Both the position numbers and the translations under genes were made by a program. The notes under the pieces were generated by a model that was given only the letters and a program-made list of their open reading frames with translations, had not been told where the DNA came from and made no database searches. Below are positions 1-53,703 of a stretch of 64,000 bases of DNA, in pieces (the first letter of the stretch is position 1; each line of letters opens with the position of its first letter). This stretch comes from Monocercomonoides exilis PA203 (taxonomy: Eukaryota > Protista > Preaxostyla). The stretch lies in contig LSRY02000049.1 in NCBI GenBank assembly GCA_001643675.2, positions 372,001 to 436,000 on the forward strand, read 5' to 3'.

Positions 1-2833
1 CTGTTGTTGCATCTGCTGTAGCTGCTGCATCTGGTGTGTCTGCTGTGAATGCGAAAGAGAAGTGATATTGTGTGAGTGCTGCTTCTGCTGGAAGAAGCTC
101 TGGAATTCAGAGGGAGACGAAGGCTGTGGTGAGTGCAAGTACAGCAAGGATTGCGTGTCTTCGTCGATTGGATTCATTCCTCGTGGCGATGGTGATTCTG
201 CTGATTGAGAGGAAGAAATGGAAGAAGATGTCTTCATTGAGTCAAAGGAAGAGAAGTCGTCGAAGGAGGAAGCGAGGCGAGGCAAGCGTGGCGGCACTGG
301 ACTGGCACGGTGCAATACATTTGAGTCGAAGGAGCCTTGATAAGAGGATGAAATAGAAGGTTCTGTGTATGATTTTATAGAAGAAGAAGAAGAAGAAGAA
401 GAGGAGGAGGAGGAGGAAGTAGGAGAGGAGGAAGAAGAAGCAGAGAACGAAAGAGGAGTCGAATCTGACACACGCATCTCAGAAGCAATGGATGATGCTG
501 TGTCTATCCCAGTCTGAGGCACATGGAATATGGATGAATCAGCAGAAGTCGCTGGATGCAACTGATGAGAGCCGGAAAGAGAAGGAGAGTGAGAAAACTG
601 ATAAGACAAGTTGGATGCAGTGGAAGGAGGCATTGCAGGAGAATGAGGGGGAGAAGGGGAAGGGGAAGGGGAAGGAGAAGGTGAAGACGAGGAAGAAGAA
701 GGAGAATGCAAACTTGTGCGTGAATTCGAAGGAGATTGCGCTTCATCCTTTGAATACAAAGCAGAAGCAGAGGAAGAGCCATTCATAGAAGAAGAAGAAG
801 AAGGAGGAGGAGGAGGTGAGCGATGTGAGTCAATGGCAGAGTAATAAGGAGACATAGCAGGAGGCGAGCGGAATCCGGGGTGTATGTTTGCTTGTAGCTG
901 AAAGGGCGCTTGAGAAGAGAAGGAAGAGAGTGAGACAGTCTCTGCTGTCACATCTGCTGCCTGGCTGCCTTCACTCAGCTCAGTCATCACACTATATGAG
1001 CTCTGAATATCTGGCTCGATTTGTTCAATGGAAGTGCTTGTGTGTTTTTTGTGGGATTTCTTCTTCTTCTTTGAGCGGGCGAGCTTGCCTTCTGCTGCTG
1101 CTCCATCATTATTCACTTTCTCTGACTTCTGCTTCTGCTTTTGTTTCTTCTTCTTTCTCTTCTTTTTCTTTGTTGTTGTCAATGTATTTATCTTTTCCTT
1201 CGGTGTTTCAAACTGTGTTATCCTACCAAATTCAATATTCTTCTCACTCTCAATAGAACTCAAAGAAGAAGCAGAAGAAGCAGAAGCAGCCACCTCATCA
1301 CCTCCTGCCTCTTTCTCTGAAGGCTCATGCAATGTTCCCAGCGTAGACTGATCTGATAGTGTTGCAGATGTGTTGGCCTTAGCTACACTTGCTTCTTCTT
1401 CATCTTCCACCTTTTCATCTTCGTCGTCCTCTCCTTCTTCTTCCTCACCGTCCTCTTCCTCTTCTCCCTCTTCTTCGCTCTCTTCTTCATATGACTCATC
1501 ACCTTCTTCTTCTTCATCTTCCATGCTTTCATATTCATCCTCGCTTTCTTCACCTGCTGCTCCTCTTTCGTTGTCAGATCCATCTTCAGATTCATCGTCA
1601 TAAGCCTTCACATTCATAAGCGATTCTTTCCCTTCTCCTTTCACCTCACTCGAATGCTGATAACTTGATTGGCTTTGCTTCTCAACTCCGCTGGTATTAA
1701 TCTCTGTATTATTATTATTATTGTTATTACTTTGTTCTGTTTGAGATAAAATGGATGTCTGAAGAACAGAAGGAGGCTCCTGTGAAGATGCTGCGATAGA
1801 CGAGACATCAGCAGAAGCTCCTGTGCAAAATGACGAGTGAGAAAGAGCTGCATCATTTGGCAGTCCAACTGGAGCAGATGGAGTCAAAGAACCTGAAGAC
1901 AGGGCTCCTACTGAAGGTGGTGTGATAACAAATGATGAAGAGTCATTGTAATGAGAAGAAGAAGATGATGATGGTGAAGGATGAGAAAGTGTGTTGAAAG
2001 AAGAAAAAAGAAGGTTCTGCTGGCGATTCGGGAGTGTTGGTGACATTAAATATGGCATCTCCATCAATGGAGATGGTGGTCTGCTTTGCAATTGCAGTTT
2101 CTTTTGAAGCTTTTTTTGGAGTTTTGCTTCTTTATTGATCTGTTTATAATGCTTTGCCATTTCAGTATGGACGTAAACTAAAAATACCAGCAACTCTTCA
2201 TCTGGAAGAGGCGCCACTCCTTTAGCATTTATTTCACCCACCATTTTCGTGTGAACAAGAAGATATGCATGAGAAAAATTTGGAAAAGCTTCCGGAAAAT
2301 TCTTAAACGGATCCTCAACAAAAGAAATGCGATGTCGCTCAATCGCCTGAACAAGAAACGCTGGTTCTGTAAATAGAAGAGTTGTATACGATGTAATCAA
2401 ATCATCGATCATTTTCTGCAGAGTTGAAAAGATATCAACAGTACTGATGAAGAAAATAATATAAATTAGAAAGCAAAAATTACATTAACTTCAACAAATA
2501 CATAAATTTGGAAGCAAACTATTGATTGTAATTGGGTTTAGGACCCAAAACAAACAGTACAACGTGCTTAAGCATTTCAACTTGAAGATTAAGATGTGGT
2601 ATTGAAGTTTCGTTGTCCGAGCCAGCCATAAAAAAGAAGTTTTCTGTTGAAAGGAAATGACATTTCCATTTGCCGAAAGTCATCTCTTTTATACCTCCGA
2701 GAGGGTCATCTTGAAGAACCATTTGAGCAATTTGAAGAACGTCGGTAATAACTGATAACTTTGGGTTATTCAAATATATTTGTTTTTGCTGATCGCCAAG
2801 ACATAGGTATGTTGTAATAGGATCTTTTGGCAT
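1..2833 (-). CDS. HPS1: HPS1-like (Mon1/HPS1/Fuzzy family) longin-domain protein with long Ser/Glu-rich region; 3' end runs off the window
   Basis: ATG at 2833. Intron 2444-2519 (GT..AG) joins ...NYNQY-TVDIF. Translation gives SYTTLLFTEPAFLVQAIER and HAYLLVHTKMV, resembling HPS1 TYSRLREQEQCFAVEALER and HAFLLVHSKLL. The frame stays open to position 1. Confidence 0.65.
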
Positions 2834-3056
2834 CAAACTCTTGGCGAGAAATCAAGATGAAAAGAAAAATGGAAAAACGAGTAAAGTTATGGTTATTCTT
2901 TGATCAAAAACATTGAAAACATTGAATTCATACAAAAGTGAAATACTTTAATCATATCACATATCATTATTAATTACAAAGCAAAGCATGAGATGATAAA
3001 AACAGAAAAATCGATAATTTTTTACACCAAAGCTGATAAAATAATTGTAATTTTTT

Positions 3057-6000
3057 CTAGTAATTTTTCTTTGGAGAGGAAGTTGTTCTTGGAAGAAGTG
3101 AGCGAGTAGATCTAGCAGAAGGTGATGAATATGAAGAAGACTGAGAAGAATTTGACAAAGGTGAGGAGGAATTTTTGGAAGTGAAAAAGGACGAAAGAGG
3201 AGAAGTGGAAGGCATGTCAGTCTCTGAGCGAGGGGTGGGCTTGATGATTGAGTCGAGCGGAGTCAGCTGGGCTCCGTCTGACTCGTCGAGCGACTTCGAC
3301 CGGAAAGAACTGAATAGCTCTTCCTCTTTCGTGGGTGCCGGCTGCTGCCGCGGCGGTGACTGCGATTGAACCAGCTTCTCTCTTTCTCTCTCCTTTTCTG
3401 CAAGTTTCCTCTTCTCTCGCTCTCTTTCAAGCTCTTTCTGTCTTTCCATTTCCATCCGTTTTGCTTCCTCTTCCTCTTCCCTTTGCCTCCTTTTCGCTTC
3501 CTCCGAATCTCCGAACATCTTCAGCGCTGAGCTCAACGAGTCAATATCTCTTTTCAATCGATTGACCACACTAATATCTGCTTTCTCCTTCAGCTTCTCA
3601 GCAACCTCAGCTCTATCTGCTTTGCCGGCAATAACTCCGCTCTGATCAATAGGAACAGTCGCTGCCACGTCGTGCAGCTCCACTTTGTCTGCTTTCAATG
3701 CCAGTTTGGAGTCCGTTTCTCTGCCAAGTGTCTGAAGATCGTTGTGGTTGTTTTGCACAGCCGATGAAACAGACAGAAGTAATTGTGAGTTATTGCTAAC
3801 ATCTCCCTCTAATTGTGCGTGCTGCTCTTCAAGCTTGCTTATCCTGTGTTCGTGCTCGCCAATTATATTCTGCTGCTTTTGGGTGATTTCGTTCATACCT
3901 ACAAGCGAAGTCTCCAATGCTGCAACAGTTCCTTTTGTCGTGTCTTCTTGTTCTCTGTGCTTTTCTTCTGCTTCTTTAATAGCTTCGTCCATCTCCTGCA
4001 CAATCGAAGATATTTCTGACAGTTCATGTGCTATGCTCTTCTTTATCTGGCCAAGCTCATTCTCCATGTTGGAATCTCTGGCTGCTGATTGCTCAAATCC
4101 ATTTGCTGTGTTACGATGCTGCTCCATCAACGCGGAAGACAAAGTGACTGCATCTTTTGAAAGTGCTTGGATGATTTTAGACATTGATCGCATCGAAGTT
4201 GGATTGCCGCTTTGTTCAAGTGAACGAATAAGCGATGGAGCAACAAGGGCTGGCGAAACAGCAGCGTCTGATGATGATGATGATGATGAGGAGGAGGAGG
4301 AGGAAGGTTGATATGATGAGCCATATAGAGGCTTTGATGTTGTTTGAGGATAAGCCGATGACGACGACGAAGAAGAAGAAGGAGCAGAAGACATTTGCGG
4401 TTGCGAGGAAGTGGATCGGTCAAACAACATTGACGCTGATGAAGGAGTTGCGAACTGTGGATCTAATTCTTCAAACTCTTCGCTTTCTCTTCCTTCAACA
4501 ATCATCAGCGTCTCTTTTGCCTTTTTCATCATCTCTTCTCTGAGTTCTTCATCTTTTTCATTCAACGCTTTCTTCAGCTCTTCTGCCACTTCATCAACAT
4601 AGTTCTTCACATCTCCCGTGCCCGCTCTCAGTTCATTCACAACATTCTGCACCTCCAATTTAAATGTATCCATCTTACCCACTTCTTCAGAACATTCGTT
4701 GAGCCTTTGCTTCTCCTTCTCACTTTCGTCCATCATTTTCTCGAATTCTCGTCCAAGTCTTTGCAATCTGTCTGAAATGGTTGAAAGATCCTGAGCAATC
4801 TCCATCTTCAGCTCGTCCTGCTTGCTGCCAAACAGCTCAGTCATCGACGCCTTCGCATCATTCACCATCTGCTGGGACGACTCAAGGCACTCCCGCGTTG
4901 ACTGCTTCATCACATTGATAGCCTCAGCCTGCTTCTCTGCTGACTGCTTCTGCGCCTTTTCGAGCATTGCCCCGAGCTCAGTGGTGCGCTGGAACTGCTG
5001 CTCGATCTCTTCGCGCGCTTTTGCAACTTCAGCTGAGTGCAGCATCACATTCTCGTTCACAGACCGAAGATTGGAGCTAACATCTTCATTCACTTTGTCA
5101 AGTGCCATTTTTGCAGATGCAACTTCTCGTCTGACAAGTTCCATCTCTTCTTTCCTTTCTTTGAGCGCATCACGATGCGCTGCATGAAGTGTGGTGTATG
5201 CTGTTATTGCGTCTTCTGCCTTGTCCATCCGCTGCTTTGTGAGGAACACTTCTGAATCCTGCTCTCTCAAGCGCCTCTGATCTTCCTTCACCTCTTCCTT
5301 CAGCTTCTGCACATCACGTGCAACATCACTGCTCTTCTCAGCCTCATCTTCGACCATTCGTTTCAGCTCTTCAACAGTAGTCGTCTCTTCCTCAATCTTT
5401 CGCTGCAGTCTGTTCAGATCCTTTTGCGTTCCTTTCGTTTTCACATCAATCTCCAAACGCTGCACGGCATCATCAACACGAGGCTTGAATTGTTCAAATT
5501 CCTTCATTTTGATCTTCAGCACTTCCACGTCGTGGAACAGCTGCACACTCGGCGAGTACTCAGCCTCTTGGCTGGCACCCAGTCTTGAAGGTGAAGGTGA
5601 TGCTGTCTGATACAGACGAGAAGGAGAAGTGCTTGACATTCGTGTCTTTTCTTTGGTGCTCATGCCTTCGTCAATACCAATATCGTCATCGCTGCTCAAT
5701 CCTTTGCTGCTTTGAAGTCTTCCTCTTCGAAGAGACGCCTTAGGAATCTGGCTCTGGTTCATTGTCTGCTGCAGCATATCAGTCGCTTTCAATGTGTCGC
5801 TCAGGACTGCGTCTTGTTCTTTCAATACTTCTTCAACATTCAGCACTCTTTCAGCAAGTATATTCAGCATTTCTGAATCGGTATTCGACCGATGTGCTCT
5901 CTCTTCATCGCTCATTGCCTCCTGAAGCCCTACCAATGCCATTCCTTGCATCTTCAGCTCACTCTTCACATCTTCTAATTGTTGGCTTGCCTGGTTGGCC

Positions 6001-35289: not shown

Positions 35290-36001
35290 AATAATTAAAT
35301 GTCCCTTATATAATAAAATGTTATTCAAATTATTGAACTAGTAGTTAAAAAATTTTTTTGAAATTTCTTTTTGGTAGATTTGATTTTCATTTATGTTTTT
35401 GTCTTTTTTTTTTTAATTTATTAAAATAACAATAAGAATAAAATTAGCGTTTATGTTATCACTCCGCTTTTATGTGAATTAATACATCTTCGATAATCTG
35501 GTTTATAGGAACAATAAAAAATAATTCTGTTTTCAAAAAAATATGGCAAGACCGCATTATATGGGAATGGCCTATTTTCTGTGAAAATAATATATGAGGA
35601 ATGTTAATAATATATATCAAGTTTTCATGCAACAGAGATGTGCGGAAGTTGACAATAAAGTAAAAAACAAAAAATGAAAAATTGAGGAAAAAATGGGTGA
35701 ATGGATTTTCAAAATTTTCAATTTTAAATAATAAATAATTAATCAACTTCCATGGGGTCAAATTCTGATGCACTTGCACTGTCCCCAGCTCCAAGTGAAT
35801 CTGATTCTTCAAATTCTGTCATTTGAAGAATGTCATTTTCATCAAAAATATCAGATTCTAATTCTGATTCTGTCGAGTCACTTTCTTCACTTTCAGATTC
35901 TTCTAATTCGTTTTCTTTTCCCGTTAAATCAAAGACGATTTCCTTTATTAATTCCTCAAATTGAATTTGTAAATTGCTTCTGACAGACCACATAGATAAA
36001 T

Positions 36002-39000
36002 GGGTGATAATTTTTGAAAAATCACTTTTTTTTAGCCTGATCAGACCCACAAAAAATCAGATCGATATTTTTTGTTACCGTAATTTTTTCAAAATTAATT
36101 AAAGCACTCTTTTTTTTTACTAAGGAAGAGTTTGTCGTTTAATTATTAACAATACACTTTGTTAACACAAACTGATAATGTCAAAAATTGAAGATAATAT
36201 GTTTTCTTCTTCTTATTTGAATGAAACTCGCGCATTTGAATATTTCAAAATTTCTTCTTTAATGAGATGAGTTTTTCCTTTAAATTATTCGAGTTAAAAC
36301 ATTAATTATCATTTTCACCTCATTGAGAATACAAAATAATTAATTAATTTCATTGAATCTTTTTATTTTCACATATTTTTTTCCTAACAATTTTGCTTCT
36401 TTTGACGTTTTCTACGAATCAAAAATAGCATTAAAACAATATTGAAAGAATTTATTTGGTTTTGTGCTGAAAAGCAATATATAAAAACTTATTAAAGCCA
36501 AAAAAATAATATCTTTAGTAATTTTTGAATAATGTTCATTGTTATCTCATGTTCAATCAACACTTTTCATCGATTGGAAATAGCAGCGTTATTAACTTCC
36601 GTAAGTTTCATTGATTTCATCGAGAGGAACATACTAATTATGATATTTGAATCTAACGGATCGAAGAAAAATTGAAATAAGCCATTTCGTTGAGAGCATC
36701 AGTTATAACTGGATTCGACTCAGGAGTGGAGTCATCTGCTGCATAAGGGTGCAGACGCACAAGCGAAATGACACTCAAGGAGATGTTTTCAGTTTTGTGA
36801 GAAGTGCCACTTCCTTTGCTTTCAGCATTTATGGGAACGTCGTCGGGGAGTTGGTAAATTTTCTGGAGATTGATGTGAATGCGTTCCCTTTGATCTGCGA
36901 TATACTTGACTGGTTTCCAACGCAATCAGTGAAGAAGTGGATGGTATCGTAATTGCTAAAGTCGGAGAGCGTGGCAGTGTAACTGGACGACAAAGGCGGA
37001 TGAAGTGCAGATGCTGAGAGAGGCTTTCGGGAATAACGAGGCGATGATGGCGGAGCTTGCAGGGGAGAAGGAGGAGCTGTGTGGCGGATCCTGGAGCTAA
37101 AGGAGCAGCATAAGGAGGCTAAGCAAAAGATAAAGAAGAGACATTCGGAGTTCAACATGCTGTTGCAGAAGATCAGGGACAAAGAGCGGATCTCGAAGAT
37201 GACGAGCGGGCTGGCAGAGCAGCTGCAGGAGAAGGACAAAATCATCCGAATGCGGGAGAGGAAGATTCTGGAGCTGACCGAAAAGCACAACATAGAGGAG
37301 AAGGGATTGCAGGAGCAACTTGTTGCAATGAAGGAGAAGATGTCGTATGAAGAGACAGGGCAGTTATAGGCCGGAATGGTTTAGACACCGGAAGGGAAGG
37401 AGAAGCAGAAGAGAAATATGAGCATGGAGTGTATTTTTTGTAAAAATTGATTACGATAGTGAATCAGATGATAACAGTTTCTGGGTTGCTTAGGCAAGAA
37501 GAGTTCGAAACGGTGCATGTGCTTTGGATACCGATCACGTTGCATTCGTTTGTGAGGATGAAGCGTTTATTGAAGCCACTGAAGACAGAGCTTAAGTATT
37601 CGCTGGTATGGAAACTGTTAACGTCCAGTGGATATTCAGAGACTAATTCGCAGAAAATATAAGCAGGAGCAGAGAAGTGTGGTCAAAGGTGGCGGATCAG
37701 ACGCAGATGTTTTGGGGCTTTGGATTTATGTGGATGCGGAAGAAGCGCGAAATCCAGAAGAAGGGAGAGGCTAATCGATAGATGATGATATGCGAGGTGA
37801 ATCCATACCGGAAGGACTTTGTGGAGGTGTGGCTGTTTGGGAAGTTTGTATAAATGTTCTCAGGAGATTTGTTGTTGTTCAAACTGGTATTTAACAAGGC
37901 GCTTGAAATAGAATCGAAGATAAAAATATAAATGTTTTTTGTGGTGTTTCAATGGATTCATATAAAGAAGCGGGACAAAGATGTGTTGATATTACTGTAG
38001 TTTCTTGAGAACTACGTCATGGAAGAAGCAGCAAAGCGGAAGGAGGCGATAAAGGAGCAGTGCGATCAGATGCATAGAGGCTCTCCATTGACATTATCAT
38101 CATCGTCATCGGGAGCTGTGTGAAGAGACATCTTTTCAGATGAAATTGAGTCTTTCTGTGCGCATCATTAGCTGAGGCTTTAAGCGCTGTAGATGTCAAT
38201 CTTCCATGATACGAATTAACTGTCTGTGTTCTGTTTGCTATCATTTACGCCGGTGCTTGAGGTGTGCCAGCGCAATGCCTTCTTCGAGCTGCGCCTGCAT
38301 CTGCTGAATGTGTGTGACACTGCTGACCTGTGAATACCTCTGACGGCGTCTGAAAACTGAGCGGTTGTGAAGAATGTGAATCATAACTTTGCGCTGCAGA
38401 GTCAAAGCTGCACTGTCGCGTGCGGGTGCTTTAATGGGTTTTGGAGGGAGCAGGGATTGAAATCTGGTTGAAGCGTTCGATGAAGAATATGAAGAAGACT
38501 GTGAGGAAGAAAGAAGGGTGGAGGAGTTGTTCTTTATGTAGTGGCTGGTGACGGAGTTAATGGAGTTGGATGATTGAGGCAGAGGAAGCGAATGAGAAAA
38601 TGAGGGTGTTGATTGAAATGAAGTGAAAGGACGTAATCCAATATCATAAAGTGTGTTTCGAGAAATAATCAAAAAGAATCAGGAGAAGCTGTAAAAAATA
38701 GTTGCGCCTCTGATTGTGGAAGAGCGTTTGCTGCAGTGGCTGAAGTTTGTGAAGTCGGAAGAGTTGATTGCGATTCCTCCATATTTTCCAAATCAGCAGA
38801 AGGAGAATTTTTCATCTGAAAGAGAAAAATCAAATGGAAACGAACGCGATTCTGGAAGAGAGTAAAGAGAAGAAAATGTGGAGCGAATATGAACGAGAAT
38901 ATGAAATGGATGTTTGGAGTCAGATGGAGAATTGAAACATTTTGGATAAGGCATGGATGGAGAAGATATATGTGATTATGCAGCGATTGAGGCGGTTGTG

Positions 39001-40718
39001 CTCAGCAAAATTAACTTTTGTCTCTCTGTCACTATTATTGACATTTTCACATATGCCTTATCTTCCGCAGAGGCGCATCGAAATAGCTTCTGGAAACTTC
39101 CTCCTTCCGTGCCGCACCGGCGCTGCAGCTTTGCTCTCTTATTTTTGCAGTTGATTGAAGCATCGAGTCAGAGTAACGTGTTCCAATCGAAGAAGCCTGA
39201 TGTCGAGAAGATTTTGAAGGATCAGAATAAGACGAGGAAATGTACACAAACATTATCTCCACCATTATCTGCTTCGATTAAGTATTCTGCACATTAATCT
39301 AATTCTTTTTTCTTCCAGTAACTCTTAGATGATTCGTAATTGTTCTTTTCAGCCCATAAAAGATGCATTAGGATAGTTTAAAAGTTATTTCTTGAATTGA
39401 TAAGTGAAAATGATGAAGTATTGGAGATAAGTTTTGCTCACTTCATATTACTGACCTATTGTATGTAATTCTGAACATTTATTTGCTCTACGGAAAATGC
39501 TGTTTGTTTTGTGTGTCCGCTTCAAGAAAATATATACAGCCTGCATATGTGCATCTCTTCTGTTCCAGTGATCTCAAATAGCACTGAGTCTCGATAATTA
39601 TCACATGCAGAGTCATGCACAAGAGTGAGGTCATTGACAGTCAATGTTCCCATTGTTACAGAAAAAAAAGTCAAGCCAGCTTCTAATAATTCTGTTTACT
39701 CCGTTTTGTAAAAATTGCTTCTATCAGAAATTATGAATGTCCTCACACCATGGTTCACACTTGTTCATTTTGAAATAATTCTTGTGAGAATCACAATATT
39801 TTTTTCTAAGTTGGGGATCAGCTAAATTAAAAAATAACAAATAGAATTTAATAGATGGCTTTATTTCTTTCTGGTTGTTGTTGTTCTTTTCCAAATAAAT
39901 TCCTATGAAAAATAAGAATTACTCGAAATCTCACATTCATAGATGTTCAATGAGAATTTTTCATGACAATTTTTCATTGAATTTTACAATCATAAATGAT
40001 AAACTTTATCATATTGATTCTTGTCATATTCTTCAAATGTGCAGCTAAAAGTGCAGTCATCAATCTTTTCGCCTTTTAACTTTTATTTTAATAAAAAATG
40101 GCAGGAAGATTTGAAATCCATATTTGTAAATAAAGCAGTATCTCTCATCTTATCAGTCCAATCTTTCAGATGGAGTTTTGAGACTGGAAAGGTTAATATT
40201 GCTTGAGCAACAGACTTATGCTTGTGAAGCAAATTGACTTTCTTTGTGAATGAAATAGAGACGCAAAAATTTTTGAGAAACGCAGAAATCCCAATAATAG
40301 ATAGTGTACATTAAATTTTCATAACATGATTTAATAAATGTTCGATTTCCAAACCCTATGTTCAAATGTTGAATCCAAAAAGCGCACAAATTATAGATTG
40401 ATCATTAATGGAACAAATTTCGATTACCATGCTTCAAAACATCAATTTGTTTTTCGAAAGTGCTGTGGACAGTTTCATAACGATTATTTATATTAACCTG
40501 CATTCATTTATACTTGAAATAACAGATTTCATTCTGATCAAATACACAATATAAATCCAATATTTTCAAAACTTTTTTAATTCTCCTTAAAAGAATGCAT
40601 TTGTCAATTTAACATCGTTAATATGAACTTTATACATAAAAATTGAAGAAATTAAATCTGACTAAAAAATAGTGGTTCGAATTTTTGATATGTGGTGATT
40701 TTTCAAAAATTTTCACCC
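36002..40718. mobile_element. 4717-bp non-autonomous TIR element nested in Merlin and carrying gene fragments
   Basis: 24-bp TIR GGGTGAwAATTTTTGAAAAATCAC (one mismatch). 4-bp TSD AAAT at 35998-36001 and 40719-40722. No transposase motif recognised inside. Confidence 0.85.
39020..40300 (-). pseudogene. Decayed fragment of a beta-helix-type surface-protein gene carried inside the nested element; a further piece probably lies at ~36650-36930
   Basis: Reverse translation gives EAGLTFFSVTMGTLTVNDLTLVHDSACDNYRDSVLFEITGTEEMHICRL and QTAFSVEQINVQN, with stops and frameshifts. The alternating beta pattern recalls oxymonad multicopy surface proteins (recalled, not searched). Confidence 0.5.
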
Positions 40719-41781
40719 AAATAGTCCCCAAGACACTTTTCTCTGCATCCAGTTCTTGGAAAATATTTCCGAAAATTCATCCACAATCCTTCGACAGTGT
40801 TAGTGCAGGAATGTGTAATTTTGTTTTTGAATTCTCGCTTGTGACAGACAGTATCATGAGCGTAACCATAATCTTTCAATCTGGCATAAGCCTTCCTTTC
40901 ATCGCTCATAATCCGAGTTCCAGGAAGAATTTTGTCTCGTGTTATTGGAACCAATGTCTCAGCCTTCCTATTTGGCACAATCATCACAAAGTTCTTTCCC
41001 GCACCTCCATCTGGTTTCCTTTCCACAGCTCTAAATATCCAAATTTGTCTCTTCTTTTTCCCTCGCCCATACTTTCTGCGCCTCTAAACCGCTTCGTCGA
41101 TCTCCACAATTCTTCCCGTCCCTCCTCCAACAGCTTGATTTTTGTTCCAAATAGATGTGCATCTGACTCGAATAACGCTCGTCCAATAATGCATTGTGTT
41201 TTCACTTATTCCAAGCAGTTCACCAATGTGTGCGGCTAATATTCCAATGTCATTATACAATACAATCATCAAAAACTTTCTCAGTGGTATTTTCGATTTT
41301 TCCAAAGATGCGTTTTTAAAAGACTGTCAGTTTTTTGACAAATTTTCTGTATCTCCCGAACTTGTAATATTTGCCTCCGGATGAGAATATCATTTAGCAT
41401 TTATCATGTCTGCATTCAGGAGCTTCTCCTTCCAGCGCATTTTCGAAATACCATTTCCAAGCACTCATTTCATCCGAAAATATATTGTTGAGTTCACAAA
41501 TAGGTGTTTTTGTGAACATTCGTTGTGACAAAGACATTTGATGAATGTTTGATCAAACCCAAAAATACTTTAAAATAACCTTTTATCAAAAAATAAAAAC
41601 TATATAGAAGGTCACTTTCCGCAAGTTTTTTGGAGATAATAATTGCTTAATAATTTAAAATAAATCATCAAAAACGGAAAAAAACTTATTCCAGGTGTTC
41701 CCATATCTTCAGGTCTTGCCAAAAATATCCAAGAAAAATTCCACTGTCAATTTTCGGTTTTTTGAAAATATGAAAATATCA

Positions 41782-45444: not shown

Positions 45445-48400
45445 TCATTGATTTGATTCAGAGCAAGATGCAAGGAGTCGAAGCTCAGAAACATTCACAT
45501 TCGAATCTTCATCGTATGTGATCGCATCCGAAACGGTGAATATCACAGCCCCAGCCGGAAAGTGCTCCAACAGCTCCCGCTTCATCCCAATCAGCGTCGG
45601 CCTGGCTTTCTTGTCCTCTGAAAGCGCTGCCAGGATCACTTCGTCATACGACGAGTTCGCCTTCGAGCAGTTCGGCCTCTCCCCATTCAGAATCTTCTGC
45701 CCCGCCACCACTGCCTCATACTCCCCAAACGGGATCTTCAGCGTCACACACTCCCAGAGCATCATCCCAACAGAAAACACAACTGTCTTCTTCGATCCCT
45801 GGCTCTTTGTTCCATTCAGCAGCTCTGGCGCCTTCCACCTCATGCACTCGTTCTTGCTGTCTTCCTCATCCTCAAATGCTGATGAGGGCAGAGAGTCTCT
45901 GTCATCATCATCACTTGTTGATGTGACAACAGTTGACGAAGAGATGGAGGATGAATCTGGATCCGAGTCTGACGAGCAGTCTGAGTGCATCGCTATTGTG
46001 ATCACCATGTGCTCAGAGAACAGCACAATGTGGGGATTCAGATTTGTCAGCGATTGAAGTGGATTATCCATCTCGTCAAAGGAGTGAAGTGCCCCATTCG
46101 CCACCCAGAACAGGATCTGAGCAGCTGTCAACTCCCTCTCCTTCAATGATCCAATTGCCATTTCTTTCTTCTCATTCTTTCCATGAAGCAGCATAAACAG
46201 TGAATCCCTCAAGTCAACAATCAATTTCTCATGAGGAGATGAGCAAGCCATCGCATCCACCAGATTCGACATTGATGATGTGGTTGGACATAGATCCTCC
46301 CCTCGAACAAAAGTTGAATCAGAATCGGTCGTTGAAGTGGATGAGATGGATGGAGAAGGAGTTCTCTTTCTAATTTCTTCTTCTTCATCTTTCTCCAGAA
46401 TCCATTGAGGGATCTTGTCTGAATCTCTTCCAAGGATATATTCAGTCGATCCGCTCTCAGATAGAAGATGCTCTGATGATTCTGAATGCTGAAGGCTTTT
46501 CGCATATACCCTCTTCTTCATCCTTTCATCATTCTTCTTCTCTGCCTCCCTCTCTGCTCTCCTCCACTGCTCTTCTGGTGACATCTCCATCGTTACCATT
46601 TCAAACGCCTTCGGATCTTTCTTCACAGTCTCATTCACAATCTCTTCTAATTCCCTTGTTCTTCTCTTTTGCTTTTTCCATCGAACAACAAACAGAATAA
46701 ATCCAATGAGAACAATCAAAAACAAAACAGTTAATACAACAACAATAATTGTCCATATTGACTTTCCTTTCTTTCCTCCTTCGACAATCCTTTCATCTCC
46801 TTTTGATTCTGAGACACTCTTGTTTTTCAGAATGAATGACTCAGTTGCGGATGGCGAATCAGTTTTTCCAAACAGAATACATACCATCACTTCTGCTTCA
46901 CTTGGCACACCTTCAATTGTCTTGACAGGAACAGACCCATGCACCTCTTCTTCTGAAATCACACCATTTTCATCAAACAAATATTTCTCAACCACCTCTT
47001 CATCCACAACTGCTGCAACTGTTTCGAATGAGAGATTGCAAGGGAGGAGAAGTGATCCTCTGAACACAAGATTCACCTTCTCCCCTGACTTTTCAGCTGA
47101 CACACTCTCCACCTTCGGGATGAAAAAGGGAGATGCCCTTTCTCTGGCAATCCCTTCCAATGAACATCCTTCATCCAATATCCAAAGTGAGAGATTTGGC
47201 AATGTTCCATCTCCTCCTTTCAAACTCACAACATTCAGTTGTGAAGAGCCTTCACACAGGATGTTCCTTCTTGCTGATGGATAATTCTGAATAGATGGAT
47301 TGTTGTTCATGAACTCTCCTTTCTCAATCTCAACAGATCCACCTGACAATGAAAGTCCTCCGTTTTCTGAATTTGCCAGCATCGAATCCTTCATCAATCC
47401 GGAACAATTTTGAAGATCAACCATGGATCCATTCCACCAGCACAGATTTTCGAATGAATCTTCGTTTATTCCAAGCTGTTGCTCACCTTTTGCCCCATCA
47501 AATGAACATGAAGATAAGTTAACATCAGCCAAATCTGTCAAAGTCACAATTCTCCCTTTATCTGAAGAAGATATGCATTTTTGGCTGGTGCAGTTCTCCA
47601 ATTCTAGCAATAAAGATGAAGATGAAGCAGTCAAGCAACACGGGCCAAACGAATCTCTGGTAATATTTCGATATGAAGACTGCTTTAACCGGAATGTCGA
47701 CGCATTTGATGCCACACTCACTGCACATCCATCTCCAAGCTTCGCGTTGCAAATGGCCAAGAAATTCATCTCAACATTTGCATCTTCGCATTCAACAAAA
47801 AGCAAAGAATTATTTGAAACGTGCGTATCATCGAATTCCAAGTGACTGCACTGGATGTTTGAACTGCCTTCTGAACCATCTGAACAAATGGCTATCATAT
47901 TTGATCTGCATTCAGTTCCTCTCAACTGAACATACTGCAGCTTGGAACTTTTGCAGTTCTGAAAAATCATGGCAGATCGATCAAATATGCTGCTGGAAAT
48001 AAGCACTTGCTGCACAGACAGGTTTGCTAGATTGTGGAAATCAAATAACTCTTTGCAATTCATATCAGAAATGTTCAAGTTCATAAACAAGCAATATCGT
48101 CCCCCTCTTGCTGCCACGCATGAAGAGCTAAGATGAAGGGAAGCAAAAGTGCATCCGTTGATCGATAGTCTGCCATTCTCCACAAGAATGATGGAGCAGT
48201 TCAATTTCATTTCAGAGTCTCCACTCCAATCTTCTTGAGCAAATGCTGTATCAACAATCGACAAGCTACCGTCAGTCAGCAATAACAAGCTGGAATGCGA
48301 AGAAGAAAAAGCGCTTCCAAACAAAAACGAAAGAAATTCCATTTTCACTCTCGATGAACACAAAATGAGACTACCCGTCTTGCTGCCGATGCTGTTGTTC

Positions 48401-51400
48401 AGCACAATATTCCCTCTTTCTTCTTCTGCATCCAGCGACTTGATCGAAACATCATGGATGCTTGCTTCACCAGATACCAGAGAAATCTCGTCGATGAGCA
48501 AATTGCTGTAAACAGAAGGAATGATGTGAGACAATGCAACATTCAAGGAAGAGCAGGGCGCACTGATAGCTCCGCATTGGCGTGAATCCGAGGTGTTGTT
48601 GGCTGAAGAAGAGGCAAATATCGTCTCGCTCTGATACCCAACAATCAGCTCCAACAAATCTTCCTCGTCATAATAATTCTGTGCTGTGCATCCCCACATG
48701 GCACGATCCCGAACAAACGGAGGTCTGAAGTCGAGCTGGAAGAGCTCAATGCTGATTTGAGATCTGATATTTGTGCATCTCACATACAGATCTCGTCCTG
48801 TGAGCGCCTTGTTATTCATAAAAGTTGTGTTTTCCAAGAGGAAAGGCAGCGCGCTATCGCTTGCAATTGATGAGCAATCCAGAAATATCGCGCCTCCTCT
48901 GCCAGTCGCCGAGCAGAAGCATCCAGAGATCGAACAAAAGTTGCAGTGGAACAACGAGCCTTCGCTCAATTTCATGGCAATGCATCCGCCATTCTCACTC
49001 AGGCTGCTTCCGCTGCTCTTGATCGACGTGTTTTGGACAAGCACGCGGGAAGGCTCGCTTCCACAGCAGCTGATGATCGACGGCTCAGAAGGAGCACTTT
49101 GGCGAAGCGAGAAAAGCGTGCAGCATTTCAGCTCAACTCTTGGACTGTCGCCTTCATTCAACATCTGTGGCTCGCCTCGCAATTCTGCCTGCGCCAGCAC
49201 TGCCACAATGCTTTTGCCCATCAGCTCCATGTTGCTCATCGAAACATTCGTCCAGTCAATGCTGCTCCCATGCGAGGCTATCAGAATGTGACTTTCGGCT
49301 TTGATGGACTGGAACGAGCAGAATGACAATTCGCATGTTCCAGACAGGCAGGCAACGATGCAATAACGAATGGGGGTGTCGGAGGTGCTGGTGAAGGAGC
49401 AGCCTTGAGCGGCAAAGGAGCTGCCACCAGTGCTTATCAGCTTCGTCTGTTTCCACCCAGAGCCATCCCCGCAGCAGATCTCAATGTTCATCAAGGAGCA
49501 TTTTCCATTGTTTGCAAGCACACAATCGCTCTCTTCTTCCTTCCCGTTCTGAGGCGAAATGGCTGCTCCGAAAGTCAGGACAGGACGAGACTTGGCATCA
49601 ACCGAAGTCACAGTGACGTTTGTAATGTCCATCTCGCAGTTCACCTGAGCTTCATCGATGATCACGAAAGTGTTCATGCTTGGTAGCGCTGGATCTTCCA
49701 AAGCACGAAAATGCTTCTCCCCATACTCCATTGTTGCACACGGCTCTTCTCCACTCCCACACCGCAGAACATCCCACCCGCTGTTCTTGCTGAGATGGAT
49801 TTCTTGAGAAGAAAATTCAATCAGAAATCGGCACAGATCGAAGTTTGTTTTTGTGGGGTCGTTCCCTACGAGCAGATTTGTATCGCCTGCTGTCTCACTC
49901 ACTTCAAATGCCAATCTCTGCTTTGTGATCGAAACGTTCAGGCCTGACGAAAGAAAGAACATGTTTTTCCCATGCTTTGCAGAGCATTGATCGAAGACTA
50001 TCTGCTGGAAGGAGAATGCATTGGAAGCCGAGCAGTCGAAATAGATGCCTCCTCCCTTTCCACCTGTTTCATTTTCGGCACAGCATTTTGTAAATGTGGC
50101 ATTTTCCATCACAATCTGACCTTGTGTCTCAACAACAATTTTCATCGCACCTCCCTCCATGCTCTGGGCGCCTTTGGCATTCGTGACATTCCAGTACAAA
50201 CACTCAATATGGCTCGAAATTGAGGATGAAATCAACACAGCGTTGTTTGCATTGCCATTAGCTATCCCTGAAAAAGTGCATTGTGTAAGACAGACAGCCT
50301 CGTCACTCGTTGTGAAGTCGTTCAGCTGTTTAGATGTTAACGATGAAATCACACCGATGAGAGGCTGATCGCCAATGTCTGTGTTTTTCACATTCAATGA
50401 AATAATCGTTGTTGGAGCGCTGGCTGTGTTTTCGCTCACTGCGATAGGCGTATGCTGAAGATTCACTAAATCAATCTGACAGTTGTCCATATTGAGACTT
50501 CCTCCGCACATCTGAAACAGCCTGTAACCTATCTGGCTGACCTCGCCCTGCTGCATCTCGAATGCACACTCTGTCAGCGACAGGTTGCTCTCAGAAGTCA
50601 AGGATATTAACGTTTCGATCTCAGCATCAAAAGAAGAAGGAAGCAAAAAGCTGATTAACTCTATGGATGCATTCCCCGTGGCTGCCATCACTTTTCCAGT
50701 CAGAGCATTCAGCGATTTGGTACAGGTTATTCCAGCTCGTAAATCATCTGATGATCTCAAGATCAAATCGGGATGATTCAGTTCGCTCTCAATTATCGCT
50801 GATTTGACGATAGCAATTACATTTGCGCTCACCTCTTCCAGTCTTTTCATGCAACAGTCAACCGATTGGCACGGATAATCCGAGAACCCACACACCACAG
50901 TGTCAGCACCATCCTCGCTTCCAACATGGATTATGCTTCCAACTTCCTCCAGAAATAGAACCAACGGAATCGAGTGCTCATGATCATTTCCATCGAACCC
51001 ACGCAAACTGTCGAAGGAGCTGTGTCCAAGCGCATTAGCAAAAGGGAGCGTTTCGTTTGTAATCGATTCCTCGAGGTCTGGGGATTGAACAAACAAGTTG
51101 TTTCCATGCTTCGCTTTATTCGGCTTTTCTGATGAAAAAGAAGGATTTGTGATGGCAAATGCTGCATCTGAGTGCTCAAGATTCAGAAAGATCCCTCCCC
51201 CGAATCCCACCTGCGAATCGAAAGGTGCCTCGCATTCTTCGAAGGAACAACCAGAAATTGTTGCTGAGCATGTGTTTGGTAGCGAGAGGAACAGCGCCCC
51301 TCCTCCATTTCCATCACCAGAAACAACACAATGCTCAAAAGTGCATCCGCTTATTGAGGCAGTGCAGGCATCCTCAAACCCTTCTCTCCACACTGCATTC

Positions 51401-53703
51401 AGGCATCCGCCATTCTGCTCGCTCTCAACATCCCAGAAAGAAGCATTGGCAAGAGAGACAGTCTTGCAATCCGATAAAGCAACTATGTTGCATTGCGAAA
51501 ATGAAAATCCAGAGACATTCACAAATTTCATCGTCAATGAACCTTCTTCAATTTGAATCAAAGATTTTGTTGATGGCTGAATAGATTGTGTGCTTTTGGT
51601 GAAACTGCACAGCTCCAATCGAACTGAGCCTGAGGAGCCGATTGCAATTGCAGATCGGTTGAACACGCAAACAAAGGAAATATTCTTTGCATTCAGTGAA
51701 CCATTCCCAATGGAGATCAAGCAGCCATTTGACGAGGCTTCGTTGCACTTTATTGCTGATGCATTGTTCTCTGCTCCACTGAGAACGATATTTCTCCAGT
51801 CGATGTCAATCGTGTCTTCTTTGAATTCTTCGCTCAACATCAAAACATTCTGCCTCAAATATGAATTCCATCTTGTCACTCCATATCCCACAGTTTGGCA
51901 TTCTGAGCCTGTTCTTCCACAAGTGTCCACATTACTTCCAGAATTGCTGATGTAAATTTCTGACTGAGCGGTTGGCAGATATGAGTCAAATGCAGTTCCT
52001 CTATCTCCGCATTTTTCTGAAAGTTCAACGCATTGCACAACTTTTCTTGGAGCTATTGAAAGTGTAAAACTCTGCAATATCTGAACTGTGTTGTTTGTCA
52101 AGCTAAATCCCTTTCCAATAAAAATATCTGCTGCATGCATCAAATTCTGCACCGTATTATTTTCAAACAAACAAAATTGGATTATGGCGTTCTTCTCATT
52201 ATCATTTATGGACGCTTCAATTCCTCCTGCACCCTGTGGAGCATCTCCTTCAAACAAATAGCAATTTGACATCACAAAATCTTCTTTCTGATTATGAAAA
52301 AAGACAGCTCCAGCATAAAAACTATATGCTTTGTTGCCTTTGAAGACAGTGTTGTAAATTGATCCACTTCCTCCAACATACCATGCAACACCTCCTCCAT
52401 AGGCTGCTGAACAATTTTCAAAAGTACAGCATAAAATAGTAGCAAATTTATTTGTTATATGAGCAAATGCTCCTCCTATAGAACGATCTCCCATTCCTCT
52501 ACAATTATTAAATATTGAATTTTCAATGTTGCAATCGCTTCCATTGCTAAAAATAGCACCTCCATATCCATATATGTTTGGAAATGTATCAGTGCATTCA
52601 GAAAATGTGCATTTGTCAACAATGAGCTTTGCACTTTCGCTGACAGCTATTGCTCCACCATGAACAGCACTGCATTCAGTGAAGCTGCAATCTTCAAATT
52701 TGATTTTTCCATCTGAAAACGATTGCGCTTCATTCGTGAAGTTCTGGTGAGAAATTGTGTTTTTCGAACGAACGAAAGAAGTATTTGATGAGCAAAAACC
52801 ACATCCATGAGAGCCAGAAATGATCACTCCATAAAACGGGCAAACGCAATCAGCTACCATGCAGCCTTCCATTTTGCTCTCTTGCAAAGAATGATTTTGT
52901 TGAAAGTTTTTGTTGTTGCTCTGAACAGAAATATTGTTGAAGGCGCAAAAAGAAGCCGAAGCAAATGATAAATCCACATCTCCAATGAATGGATTCACAA
53001 GTGATGAACAAAATGACGAAAACGTGCAGCTCAAAATATGGACATGTCCTGTCAAAGGAAGTAAGCAGGAGCTTGATGAGACAAGAGATGGCCATGCCTG
53101 CTTCCGAAAAGTGCTTTGCATAGAAATATTCGTCAATATTATTGTTCCTCCAGCACAGTCAAAAGGAGATAAATCCGTCTCTGTCTTCACGCTTATGATG
53201 CAATCGCTTACAGATAATCTGGATAATTCATTTCTCACGGAAATGGCAGATGTGCATCTTTGGTCAATTTTTATTCGTTCAACGGCCAATGACGAGTTCA
53301 GAACCATCATCCTGCTGCAAATCCAGCTCCACTCATTCTTGCTATCATTGAATGCGCCTGCAACAGAGTTATGATTAAATTCCCTTTCTGAATCCTCCTG
53401 CAATCGTTTTATGCTCTTTTCTGAATTTTGCGTCCAACCAGATGAATCCAAATCCTGCAGCTCATTAGACTTCACCACATTGATTGCATTCATATCATAT
53501 GAGGAAAGCACATTTTTGTATGTCTCATAGATGTTTCCTAGCCTTCCAATGCAAAAATCTTGAAAATCAGCTTTTTTGAATACATCTGCTTTGTAGCTCG
53601 TTTCTTCATTGCAGTAAATTGCGTGCATAATTATAGAGACACTAAAAATTGTAAAAAGCATGGCTCCTGTTCTCCCTTTGCAACGCAACGACATGCATAT
53701 CAT
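45445..53703 (-). CDS. 2752-aa intronless type I membrane protein: beta-helix (GGAI/FxxC) ectodomain, single TM, C-terminal kinase C-lobe remnant (pseudokinase)
   Basis: Hydrophobic N-terminal segment. Many GGA(I/L/M) and FxxC motifs, and four CGxxxx(P/E)Cx(T/S) modules. TM IWTIIVVVLTVLFLIVLIGFILFVV then RWKKQKRR. Tail has MRWKAPELL, VVFSVGMMLWE, IPF and RPT but no GxGxxG, VAVK, HRD or DFG. Confidence 0.88.
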   Translation of the reverse strand: MICMSLRCKGRTGAMLFTIFSVSIIMHAIYCNEETSYKADVFKKADFQDFCIGRLGNIYETYKNVLSSYDMNAINVVKSNELQDLDSSGWTQNSEKSIKRLQEDSEREFNHNSVAGAFNDSKNEWSWICSRMMVLNSSLAVERIKIDQRCTSAISVRNELSRLSVSDCIISVKTETDLSPFDCAGGTIILTNISMQSTFRKQAWPSLVSSSSCLLPLTGHVHILSCTFSSFCSSLVNPFIGDVDLSFASASFCAFNNISVQSNNKNFQQNHSLQESKMEGCMVADCVCPFYGVIISGSHGCGFCSSNTSFVRSKNTISHQNFTNEAQSFSDGKIKFEDCSFTECSAVHGGAIAVSESAKLIVDKCTFSECTDTFPNIYGYGGAIFSNGSDCNIENSIFNNCRGMGDRSIGGAFAHITNKFATILCCTFENCSAAYGGGVAWYVGGSGSIYNTVFKGNKAYSFYAGAVFFHNQKEDFVMSNCYLFEGDAPQGAGGIEASINDNEKNAIIQFCLFENNTVQNLMHAADIFIGKGFSLTNNTVQILQSFTLSIAPRKVVQCVELSEKCGDRGTAFDSYLPTAQSEIYISNSGSNVDTCGRTGSECQTVGYGVTRWNSYLRQNVLMLSEEFKEDTIDIDWRNIVLSGAENNASAIKCNEASSNGCLISIGNGSLNAKNISFVCVFNRSAIAIGSSGSVRLELCSFTKSTQSIQPSTKSLIQIEEGSLTMKFVNVSGFSFSQCNIVALSDCKTVSLANASFWDVESEQNGGCLNAVWREGFEDACTASISGCTFEHCVVSGDGNGGGALFLSLPNTCSATISGCSFEECEAPFDSQVGFGGGIFLNLEHSDAAFAITNPSFSSEKPNKAKHGNNLFVQSPDLEESITNETLPFANALGHSSFDSLRGFDGNDHEHSIPLVLFLEEVGSIIHVGSEDGADTVVCGFSDYPCQSVDCCMKRLEEVSANVIAIVKSAIIESELNHPDLILRSSDDLRAGITCTKSLNALTGKVMAATGNASIELISFLLPSSFDAEIETLISLTSESNLSLTECAFEMQQGEVSQIGYRLFQMCGGSLNMDNCQIDLVNLQHTPIAVSENTASAPTTIISLNVKNTDIGDQPLIGVISSLTSKQLNDFTTSDEAVCLTQCTFSGIANGNANNAVLISSSISSHIECLYWNVTNAKGAQSMEGGAMKIVVETQGQIVMENATFTKCCAENETGGKGGGIYFDCSASNAFSFQQIVFDQCSAKHGKNMFFLSSGLNVSITKQRLAFEVSETAGDTNLLVGNDPTKTNFDLCRFLIEFSSQEIHLSKNSGWDVLRCGSGEEPCATMEYGEKHFRALEDPALPSMNTFVIIDEAQVNCEMDITNVTVTSVDAKSRPVLTFGAAISPQNGKEEESDCVLANNGKCSLMNIEICCGDGSGWKQTKLISTGGSSFAAQGCSFTSTSDTPIRYCIVACLSGTCELSFCSFQSIKAESHILIASHGSSIDWTNVSMSNMELMGKSIVAVLAQAELRGEPQMLNEGDSPRVELKCCTLFSLRQSAPSEPSIISCCGSEPSRVLVQNTSIKSSGSSLSENGGCIAMKLSEGSLFHCNFCSISGCFCSATGRGGAIFLDCSSIASDSALPFLLENTTFMNNKALTGRDLYVRCTNIRSQISIELFQLDFRPPFVRDRAMWGCTAQNYYDEEDLLELIVGYQSETIFASSSANNTSDSRQCGAISAPCSSLNVALSHIIPSVYSNLLIDEISLVSGEASIHDVSIKSLDAEEERGNIVLNNSIGSKTGSLILCSSRVKMEFLSFLFGSAFSSSHSSLLLLTDGSLSIVDTAFAQEDWSGDSEMKLNCSIILVENGRLSINGCTFASLHLSSSCVAARGGRYCLFMNLNISDMNCKELFDFHNLANLSVQQVLISSSIFDRSAMIFQNCKSSKLQYVQLRGTECRSNMIAICSDGSEGSSNIQCSHLEFDDTHVSNNSLLFVECEDANVEMNFLAICNAKLGDGCAVSVASNASTFRLKQSSYRNITRDSFGPCCLTASSSSLLLELENCTSQKCISSSDKGRIVTLTDLADVNLSSCSFDGAKGEQQLGINEDSFENLCWWNGSMVDLQNCSGLMKDSMLANSENGGLSLSGGSVEIEKGEFMNNNPSIQNYPSARRNILCEGSSQLNVVSLKGGDGTLPNLSLWILDEGCSLEGIARERASPFFIPKVESVSAEKSGEKVNLVFRGSLLLPCNLSFETVAAVVDEEVVEKYLFDENGVISEEEVHGSVPVKTIEGVPSEAEVMVCILFGKTDSPSATESFILKNKSVSESKGDERIVEGGKKGKSIWTIIVVVLTVLFLIVLIGFILFVVRWKKQKRRTRELEEIVNETVKKDPKAFEMVTMEMSPEEQWRRAEREAEKKNDERMKKRVYAKSLQHSESSEHLLSESGSTEYILGRDSDKIPQWILEKDEEEEIRKRTPSPSISSTSTTDSDSTFVRGEDLCPTTSSMSNLVDAMACSSPHEKLIVDLRDSLFMLLHGKNEKKEMAIGSLKERELTAAQILFWVANGALHSFDEMDNPLQSLTNLNPHIVLFSEHMVITIAMHSDCSSDSDPDSSSISSSTVVTSTSDDDDRDSLPSSAFEDEEDSKNECMRWKAPELLNGTKSQGSKKTVVFSVGMMLWECVTLKIPFGEYEAVVAGQKILNGERPNCSKANSSYDEVILAALSEDKKARPTLIGMKRELLEHFPAGAVIFTVSDAITYDEDSNVNVSELRLLASCSESNQ

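Follow-up and report, generated by a model that had tools for sequence, protein, structure and literature searches.

The 4,717-bp stretch at positions 36002-40718 of the window (the 64,000 nucleotides that we analyzed from a contig of the mitochondrion-less protist Monocercomonoides exilis) is, with a probability of about 0.8, a non-autonomous cut-and-paste transposon from a family with a Sola2 signature, whose interior is an inherited and decayed chimera of host genes. Its reading as a Pack-type element was supported by four properties: (i) terminal inverted repeats (TIRs) accompanied by a target-site duplication, (ii) the absence of transposase coding capacity, (iii) homology of the interior to host genes, and (iv) the presence of the loaded element at different sites. 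The initial annotation had described a transposase-less GGG...CCC element with host-like gene fragments, and this description held, as the pieces that we call A, B, and D are host-related and no transposase was found in the copies examined. The accompanying proposal of a gene-fragment-capturing transposon was correct in that the element carries fragments of at least three host genes, but the mosaic was inherited, and not captured by the copy in the window.

The element begins and ends with 24-bp TIRs, as had been proposed, located at 36002-36025 (GGGTGATAATTTTTGAAAAATCAC, plus strand) and 40695-40718 (GGGTGAAAATTTTTGAAAAATCAC, as read on the minus strand). One mismatch separates the two ends, and a shuffled-sequence control gave 0 matches. 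The 4-bp duplication AAAT borders the element on either side (35998-36001 and 40719-40722). The suggestion that the unit sits within a transposase ORF and has its own duplication was confirmed: when the element and one AAAT were excised in silico, the open frame was regained, with ...GDYL running directly into SMWSVRSN in a minus-strand transposase of the IS1595/Merlin type (PF12762, E 7.5e-16). The genome was searched using two queries, the 24-nt TIR and the 36-nt reconstructed empty site, and the latter recovered the uninterrupted site with a single AAAT, as predicted, in two further Merlin copies (C11:225276 and C11:226854; control 0). The interrupted transposon spans 35545-41721 on the minus strand, measures ~1.46 kb without the insert that splits its transposase ORF, and carries TIRs of 23-24 bp (35545-35567 and 41699-41721) with the 8-bp duplication AAAAATAT at both sides. 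Having an IS1595-type DDE transposase, TIRs, and a duplication in the 8-9-bp class, it fits Merlin/IS1595, a group already published from Monocercomonoides (PMC8101967).

Genome-wide, the TIR query returned 108 termini at three or fewer mismatches, versus 0 for the control, and the family that they delimit includes at least 32 complete elements of 3.3-5.9 kb, the window element being one of some fifty related copies; for one element type (C6, at L037), a search over 6.4 kb did not reveal the right end. Perfect 4-bp duplications flanked 17 of 24 sampled elements, and five more had duplications with one mismatch. All 17 perfect duplications start with A and end with T, and 14 have W at the inner positions, yielding the family consensus A-W-W-T. 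Both this AT-rich 4-bp duplication and the short TIRs, here 24 bp, are Sola2 features, Sola2 elements being known for AWWT duplications (ATAT, AAAT, ATTT) and short TIRs (Bao and Jurka 2013, PMC3627910). The duplication pattern, taken together with TIR length, suggests that the family is Sola2-like.

A search of 61 loci for a transposase left every ORF of at least 200 aa accounted for, the interior ORFs gave no transposase match in Pfam, and the autonomous partner whose pursuit had been recommended was not found, the 24 elements examined containing no transposase. A link of the family, by way of PF00443 positions, to putative USP-bearing Sola2-like transposases was considered and abandoned for want of co-location, as none of the 900-1,200-aa ORFs bearing the UCH domain (PF00443), which are putative USP-Sola2 transposases, lay within 25 kb of the listed TIRs or was enclosed by them. 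Transposition would be supplied in trans by a Sola2-type enzyme whose gene lies at another genomic locus. Several superfamilies produce 4-bp duplications, and with no Sola2 transposase tied to the family TIRs, membership in a different one (piggyBac, Kolobok, Chapaev, Academ, or an undescribed superfamily) is a credible but unlikely alternative. The duplications, however, are of the form A-W-W-T and never TTAA in the 24 elements, making piggyBac and Kolobok less likely; the termini read 5'-GGG...CCC-3' rather than 5'-CCC...GGG-3'; and the AWWT set is identical to that published for Sola2 (PMC3627910).

Within the presumptive Sola2-like ends, the interior has a GC content of 0.41-0.51, compared with 0.23-0.31 in the AT-rich subterminal parts (plus strand, 36026-36509 on the left, with ~70-73% identity to other family members, and 40661-40694 on the right, a region common to the family). 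From left to right, the interior contains piece D (36644-36949, plus strand), a decayed, IQCH-like ATP-grasp sequence that covers the first ~75 domain positions and is fused 5' of A; piece A1 (36986-37360, plus strand), the coiled-coil part of gene A (aa 230-353 of a 1,385-aa parent); piece A2 (37467-38451, plus strand), the central part and C-terminal conserved domain of the same gene (aa ~723-1099), with frameshifts and stops; a conserved non-coding block of ~190 nt (38747-38939, plus strand), which is the best-kept part of the subfamily; and piece B (39408-40136, minus strand), a decayed fragment of the N-terminal ectodomain of a giant receptor-type tyrosine-kinase family. The window copy has no long ORF, and it appears to be an inactive relic as regards coding. 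Decayed coding-like pieces in both orientations and of differing composition had thus been described rightly, as had the ends and the duplication, and the initial annotation erred in the strand of two of its four pieces. The Ser-rich minus-strand piece placed at ~38020-38700 is the antisense of gene A, whose aa 813-1080 correspond to 37719-38396 on the plus strand (tblastn E 3e-42), and of the two surface-protein-like pieces assigned to the minus strand, the one at ~39020-40300 persists as ~39408-40136 only, while that at ~36650-36930 is the plus-strand piece D.

Gene A is, as judged from sequence comparison, a host gene and not a transposase. Its only intact copy in M. exilis is an intronless ORF of 1,385 aa (C41; L059:5555-9712, minus strand) on a contig other than that of the window, with no TIR nearby. 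Against this parent, A1 matches nt 684-1038 at 83% identity by blastn (60-79% by tblastn), and A2 matches nt 2166-2567 and 2710-3296 by blastn. Homology between the intact gene and the TIR elements begins 283 bp upstream of the ATG and ends near codon 1235, the pattern expected of a captured gene, and we infer that this ORF was the donor of A rather than merely a surviving functional paralogue. Colinear orthologues occur in Streblomastix (KAA6384421) and Blattamonas (KAK2960802), with more remote relatives in oomycetes, which are stramenopiles, and in Platysulcus; the Blattamonas gene was found at one place, is spliced, and has housekeeping genes as neighbors. An exhaustive search with A returned 164 relatives, and a homologue search with residues 630-1090 returned none, low-complexity words having probably swamped the query. 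Our own early suspicion, raised by colinear conserved blocks, that the interior was a spliced transposase gene was dropped because these blocks follow, in the same order, a host ORF that lacks introns and is represented by orthologues in other organisms.

A related possibility is that A is the element's own protein, either an unrecognized transposase or an accessory factor, which would make the family a set of decayed autonomous elements instead of cargo carriers. Consistent with this, colinearity with A, along with stops, is seen in 21 of the 24 elements, A recurs at over 150 places in the genome and is interrupted by stops in most of them, as is typical for transposon genes, and no Pfam domain was detected in A, which leaves room for a novel enzyme. 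We nevertheless consider this possibility very unlikely: the orthologues in Streblomastix and Blattamonas, both oxymonads, and the distant ones in stramenopiles, the single spliced locus in Blattamonas, and the TIR-less intact copy, with the limits of its homology to the elements, all argue against it, as does the existence of elements with the same TIRs that lack A. Further, A is a coiled-coil protein whose feature-based look-alikes include weak EF-hand-bearing clusters and provide no catalytic-core match.

The remaining cargo also points to host genes. Piece B of the window was located by tblastn with the B ORFs of sister elements, one of which (L042) has an intact B ORF that matched more than 100 ORFs of ~2,600 aa at 56-70% identity and maps to approximately aa 130-500 in paralogues P0001-P0015; B is broken in almost every copy, and the spreading and shuffling of surface-protein modules envisaged in the initial annotation is a conjecture. 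The tyrosine-kinase family to which these paralogues belong is among the largest in the M. exilis genome (PMC8767320). At the DNA level, the window's piece D is homologous to D in four other copies (L042, L049, L033, and L038). D from other copies matches PF24923 (ATP-grasp_IQCH), and the window's own D, too decayed, has no Pfam match; a parent-like D ORF of 1,553 aa (C25:2069298-2070851) covers profile positions 1-73 and 170-264. For the closest B donors and for the parent ORFs of D and of C, a piece carried by other members of the family, host status was assigned from open-frame lengths and Pfam matches. At least 450 candidate copies of D and at least 115 copies of C are present in the genome, and as both are so highly repeated, they may have reached the TIR family by way of other transposons and not straight from genes. 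An interior consisting of a decayed transposase or other transposon sequence is at odds with the orthologues of A, the intact host ORFs matched by B, and the ATP-grasp_IQCH assignment of D.

That the element arrived as one cargo-laden unit, an option raised at the outset, is borne out by a sister copy (C69) that is 93.5% identical over the entire element (K2P 0.068) and yet has unrelated flanks and a different duplication, ACTT, indicating that the element moved already loaded. The cargo of the window copy is therefore inherited, and this copy captured nothing itself. When interiors and duplications were compared across the genomic TIR loci, as had been advised, the interiors differed by subfamily: between common TIRs, the cargo may be D+A, D+A+block+B, A by itself, or fragments of C, and no single non-host interior recurs throughout. 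A very improbable account of the mosaic is that D-, B-, and C-bearing transposons inserted later and independently into a simple TIR element, for although D and C are repeated very often in the genome and nesting is common here, the window element itself sitting in a Merlin, an inverted-repeat search of the window element found no internal termini or duplications bounding the cargo pieces, A and B are simply parts of genes and have no termini belonging to them, D and A share one open frame where copies are better preserved, and the order and junctions seen in the window are kept in ~14 copies down to 81% identity.

We also examined the conserved block, which BLAST placed at 14 genomic locations with 81-94% identity, all within TIR elements, with no further copies. 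Its predicted fold consists of a hairpin and a three-way junction; 90.7% of cells were paired, versus no more than 59% when the partners were slid, and compensatory changes were seen at eight pairs. The block is thus possibly a structured RNA, as modeled; an Rfam search of the whole element, block included, gave no match. The idea that it is coding sequence, or a part of A or B, was discarded, as it has no codon periodicity, no similarity to A or the orthologues of A, and no kinase-family match. Contigs from RNA libraries match the interior of the element exactly (84-375 nt, 0-1 differences) and do not match the termini; because these are metatranscriptome contigs without strand information, we have not taken them as evidence of transcription. 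One might speculate that the subfamily is kept as a small expression unit, in which the captured upstream part of D-A drives a transcript through the folded block into the antisense kinase-ectodomain fragment, giving antisense or small RNAs that could target the largest family of surface receptors in the genome; we regard this idea as a long shot.

Uptake of the cargo was probably stepwise: A would have been acquired first, D would have replaced the 5' part of A, and the block together with B would have replaced its 3' end. Each uptake might have occurred by template switching or gap repair, which are the capture routes proposed for plant Pack-MULEs. Read in this way, the family offers a concrete, datable series for the building of a mosaic, from the capture of a nearly whole gene A, through the swapping of its ends in the order suggested above, to the amplification of the resulting chimeras. 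The family also helps to explain a part of the "unclassified repeats" that make up 35% of the M. exilis genome, and their reported overlap with the tyrosine-kinase family (PMC8767320). For annotation, it carries a warning: many short "MONOS_" proteins are gene debris borne by transposons.

In plants, DNA transposons of the Pack kind, which carry gene fragments, have been documented extensively, and our literature search found no description of such elements in oxymonads, in other metamonads, or in the Sola2 group. The M. exilis element resembles plant Pack-MULEs and Pack-TYPE elements (of Mutator, CACTA, and other TIR groups) in combining TIRs and a duplication with the absence of a transposase, in carrying pieces from several host genes that are unrelated to one another and lie in either orientation, in forming chimeric frames (here D-A), and in amplifying when loaded, a likeness at the level of sequence. 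It differs in that the duplication is a Sola2-like 4-bp AWWT, as opposed to the 9-11 bp of MULEs, the host is an oxymonad protist, and A was at first an almost entire gene, preceded by 283 bp of its upstream DNA. Piggybac elements share the 4-bp duplication and the G/C-triplet termini, but have TTAA and 5'-CCC...GGG-3' where the present family has AWWT and 5'-GGG...CCC-3'. In dictyostelids, chimeric Sola2 elements (Bao and Jurka 2013, PMC3627910) are similar in their short TIRs (12-21 bp, compared with 24 bp in M. exilis), in their AWWT duplications, and in having one end region that is common to families whose interiors, there the 3' parts, are unrelated; in contrast, they encode Sola2 transposases or Fanzor genes, neither of which was found in the M. 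exilis family, where fragments of host genes are present instead. Our finding extends a known phenomenon rather than introducing a new principle, and with this family, plant Pack transposons have a counterpart in a protist.

The element at 36002-40718 is a unit bounded by terminal inverted repeats (TIRs) that lacks a transposase, inserts at AWWT sites with a 4-bp staggered-cut duplication, and has multiplied together with a cargo of host-gene sequence. Its left TIR is the 24-bp sequence GGGTGATAATTTTTGAAAAATCAC and its right end is the complement with one mismatch, a match absent from dinucleotide shuffles of the window. AAAT flanks it immediately on both sides. A transposase of the IS1595/Merlin type (PF12762, E = 7.5e-16) is split between the two flanks, on the minus strand, and its halves rejoin in frame (...GDYL/SMWSVRSN) when the element and one AAAT are removed. 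A genome search with a 36-nt pattern reconstructed from this empty site (control hits, 0) returned two other matches, C11:225276 and C11:226854, at 3 mismatches that all spare the junction. These are uninterrupted Merlin copies, and they directly support insertion with a 4-bp duplication, as the initial annotation had supposed in placing the element, with its own duplication, inside a transposase ORF. The interrupted Merlin (35545-41721) keeps its TIRs (35545-35567 and 41699-41721), is flanked by a perfect 8-bp duplication, AAAAATAT (35537-35544 and 41722-41729), and without the insert is only ~1.46 kb long. Merlin elements are known from Monocercomonoides (PMC8101967).

In the 82.3-Mb genome (101 contigs, the window being C46:372001-436000), the TIR occurs 108 times at three or fewer mismatches, versus 0 for the control. 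At least 32 head-to-head pairs lie 3.3-5.9 kb apart, along with a few longer pairs. The comparison of TIR loci, interiors and duplications that had been proposed was made on the window copy and 23 further complete elements (n = 24), all oriented as the window copy. The 4-bp duplication was perfect in 17 and carried one mismatch in 5 more; its first position was always A and its fourth always T, with mostly A/T between (AAAT, ATAT, ATTT, AATT, AAGT, ACAT and ACTT), and the interiors differed by subfamily. No transposase-like ORF was present in any of the 61 loci examined, and open frames in the window copy reach at most 183 codons, in agreement with the original description of a transposase-less unit.

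Two family members stand back to back, 262 bp apart, at C34:510450-515602 and C34:515865-519824, their facing ends at L032:5080-5103 and 5366-5389 (locus L032; C34:515579-515888). Elsewhere, a TIR variant, GGGTAATAATTTTTGAAAAGTCAC, forms two inverted copies only 240 bp apart (G000:C6:795385-795624), probably a miniature (MITE-like) derivative of this family or of a sister family. A sister variant, GGGTGATTCTTTTTGAAAAGTCAC / ...AATCAC, recurs at L033:192-215 and 436-459, C17:607792, C19:874952 and C53:8061, and is found twice in tandem, 244 bp apart, beside the element on C15; its recurrence suggests further related families.

Diverged copies of the element retain conserved, colinear interior blocks. 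A reading of these blocks as exons of a transposon gene was rejected, as they are colinear with an intact, intronless and conserved host ORF, gene A. Decayed A sequence is present in 21 of the 24 elements; by homology, the window copy holds amino acids 230-353 (36986-37360, plus strand) and 723-1099 (37467-38451, plus strand). The only intact, parent-like copy is a 1,385-aa ORF at L059:5555-9712 (minus strand; C41:8554-12711), and contig C42 bears a near-identical, frameshifted twin at its end (L060:3159-7124, plus strand). No family TIR was found near either. The C41 gene lies ~8-13 kb from the contig end and both copies point outward; the pair looks like a subtelomeric duplicated block. In the TIR elements that are least decayed (C6 type, L037), homology to gene A runs from 283 bp upstream of the ATG to about codon 1235.

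An exhaustive profile search identified colinear orthologues of gene A in Streblomastix strix (KAA6384421, 38-43% identity) and Blattamonas nauphoetae (KAK2960802), and distant relatives in Plasmopara and Platysulcus. The Blattamonas gene is spliced and was found at a single place, among genes for a RING protein, an Arf GTPase, a cathepsin and ribosomal protein S19e. The product is a coiled-coil protein without a Pfam domain match, and its feature-based look-alikes include weak EF-hand-bearing clusters. The TIR-less intact copy, the colinear orthologues and the single, spliced place of the Blattamonas gene among these neighbors together indicate that A is an ordinary conserved host gene, so that this part of the interior, as first proposed, appears to come from a host gene rather than from a decayed transposase.

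Upstream of A lies piece D (36644-36949, plus strand), recognizable in the window only by DNA homology to other element copies; in better-kept copies, it matches Pfam ATP-grasp_IQCH over the opening 33-46 positions of the profile. A genome scan for this domain gave many D-only fragments and, among the matches listed, one 1,553-aa frame carrying both ends of the IQCH-like domain (positions 1-73 and 170-264; G000:C25:2069298-2070851, minus strand), with a 758-aa twin (G000:C25:2045734-2047287, plus strand). At least 450 candidate copies of D (about the first 75 domain positions) are scattered genome-wide. Gene C, the cargo of L039/L047-type elements, has more than 115 decayed copies genome-wide and only one long frame, of 5,757 aa, matched by that cargo at G000:C25:1665150-1667513 (minus strand) among the listed matches; this frame may represent a giant repeated gene or element.

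Near the right end, piece B (39408-40136, minus strand), noted earlier as surface-protein-like, maps to the ectodomain (~aa 130-500) of a kinase family. The best-kept B ORF (296 aa, locus L042) has more than 100 genomic matches at 56-70% identity, which in the matches listed fall within uninterrupted frames of ~2,500-2,650 aa. The window itself also holds a distant paralogue: an uninterrupted 2,752-aa ORF (45445-53703, minus strand) belonging to the giant receptor-type kinase family. Its C-terminus gives a weak kinase hit, and it is 33% identical to the transposon-borne fragment over ~aa 250-520. Relatives of this ORF are annotated M. exilis proteins whose C-terminal part is a tyrosine-kinase domain; bacterial look-alikes of these contain beta-helix and PMP repeats. 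These kinases make up one of the biggest M. exilis gene families and overlap with unclassified repeats (PMC8767320).

Within the subfamily, conservation is highest in a 190-nt non-coding block between A and B (38747-38939, plus strand; also L035:4505-4697, L034:3076-3268, L042:2408-2600 and others). Its 14 genomic copies (81-94% identity) all lie within TIR elements, and it has neither codon periodicity nor similarity to A. For the plus strand, RNAalifold predicted a hairpin and a three-way junction. After two diverged members were included, 90.7% of cells pair, versus no more than 59% for slid partners; compensatory changes occur at 8 pairs, a count not reached by any of 500 shuffles; as the alignment was fitted to the model, this is only suggestive of a folded RNA.

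Type I elements (the window copy, a copy on C69 and ~12 others) carry D, A truncated near nt 3296-3416, the block and B. Type II elements carry D and A to ~nt 3790, with no B; the C6 type lacks D, carries A from -282 to nt 3705 and has 3 differences in its TIR; Type III (L039, L047) has only ~55 bp and 37 bp of termini in common with the others, and gene C fragments. The C69 copy is 93.5% identical to the window copy over the whole element (K2P 0.068). Deletions of 145 bp and 16 bp set it apart, its flanks are unrelated and its duplication is ACTT. The window element was therefore already loaded on arrival in the Merlin and itself captured nothing; of the two histories initially considered, loaded arrival stands and gain after insertion does not. 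RNA-library contigs X5-X7 match this very copy with 0-1 differences in portions of A, of the block and of B (36747-40212), and cover neither the AT-rich termini nor the Merlin flanks; these are unstranded metatranscriptome contigs from cultures, whose matches are no proof of transcription.

We postulate that a Sola2-type transposase mobilizes the element in trans and that cargo was taken up stepwise by template switching during gap repair, by analogy with Pack-MULEs. A search for the autonomous partner through PF00443-bearing ORFs gave ~25 candidates, 900-1,200 aa long; no listed TIR was within 25 kb of any of them. Sola2-type elements have AWWT duplications, with the same examples, and 12-21-bp TIRs, and some are chimeras with one end in common and the remainder different (Bao and Jurka 2013, PMC3627910). 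The window family fits Sola2 by duplication pattern and TIR length, although it lacks the transposase that defines the group. The lack of a TTAA duplication among the 24 elements and the opposite terminal triplets exclude piggyBac. With TIRs, no transposase, host-gene cargo and transposition in the loaded state, 36002-40718 has every operational hallmark of a Pack-type transposon, and the initial reading as such appears sound. Literature searches turned up no account of such cargo carriers in oxymonads. On present sequence comparisons, the window element would extend the known Pack-type kind to an oxymonad.
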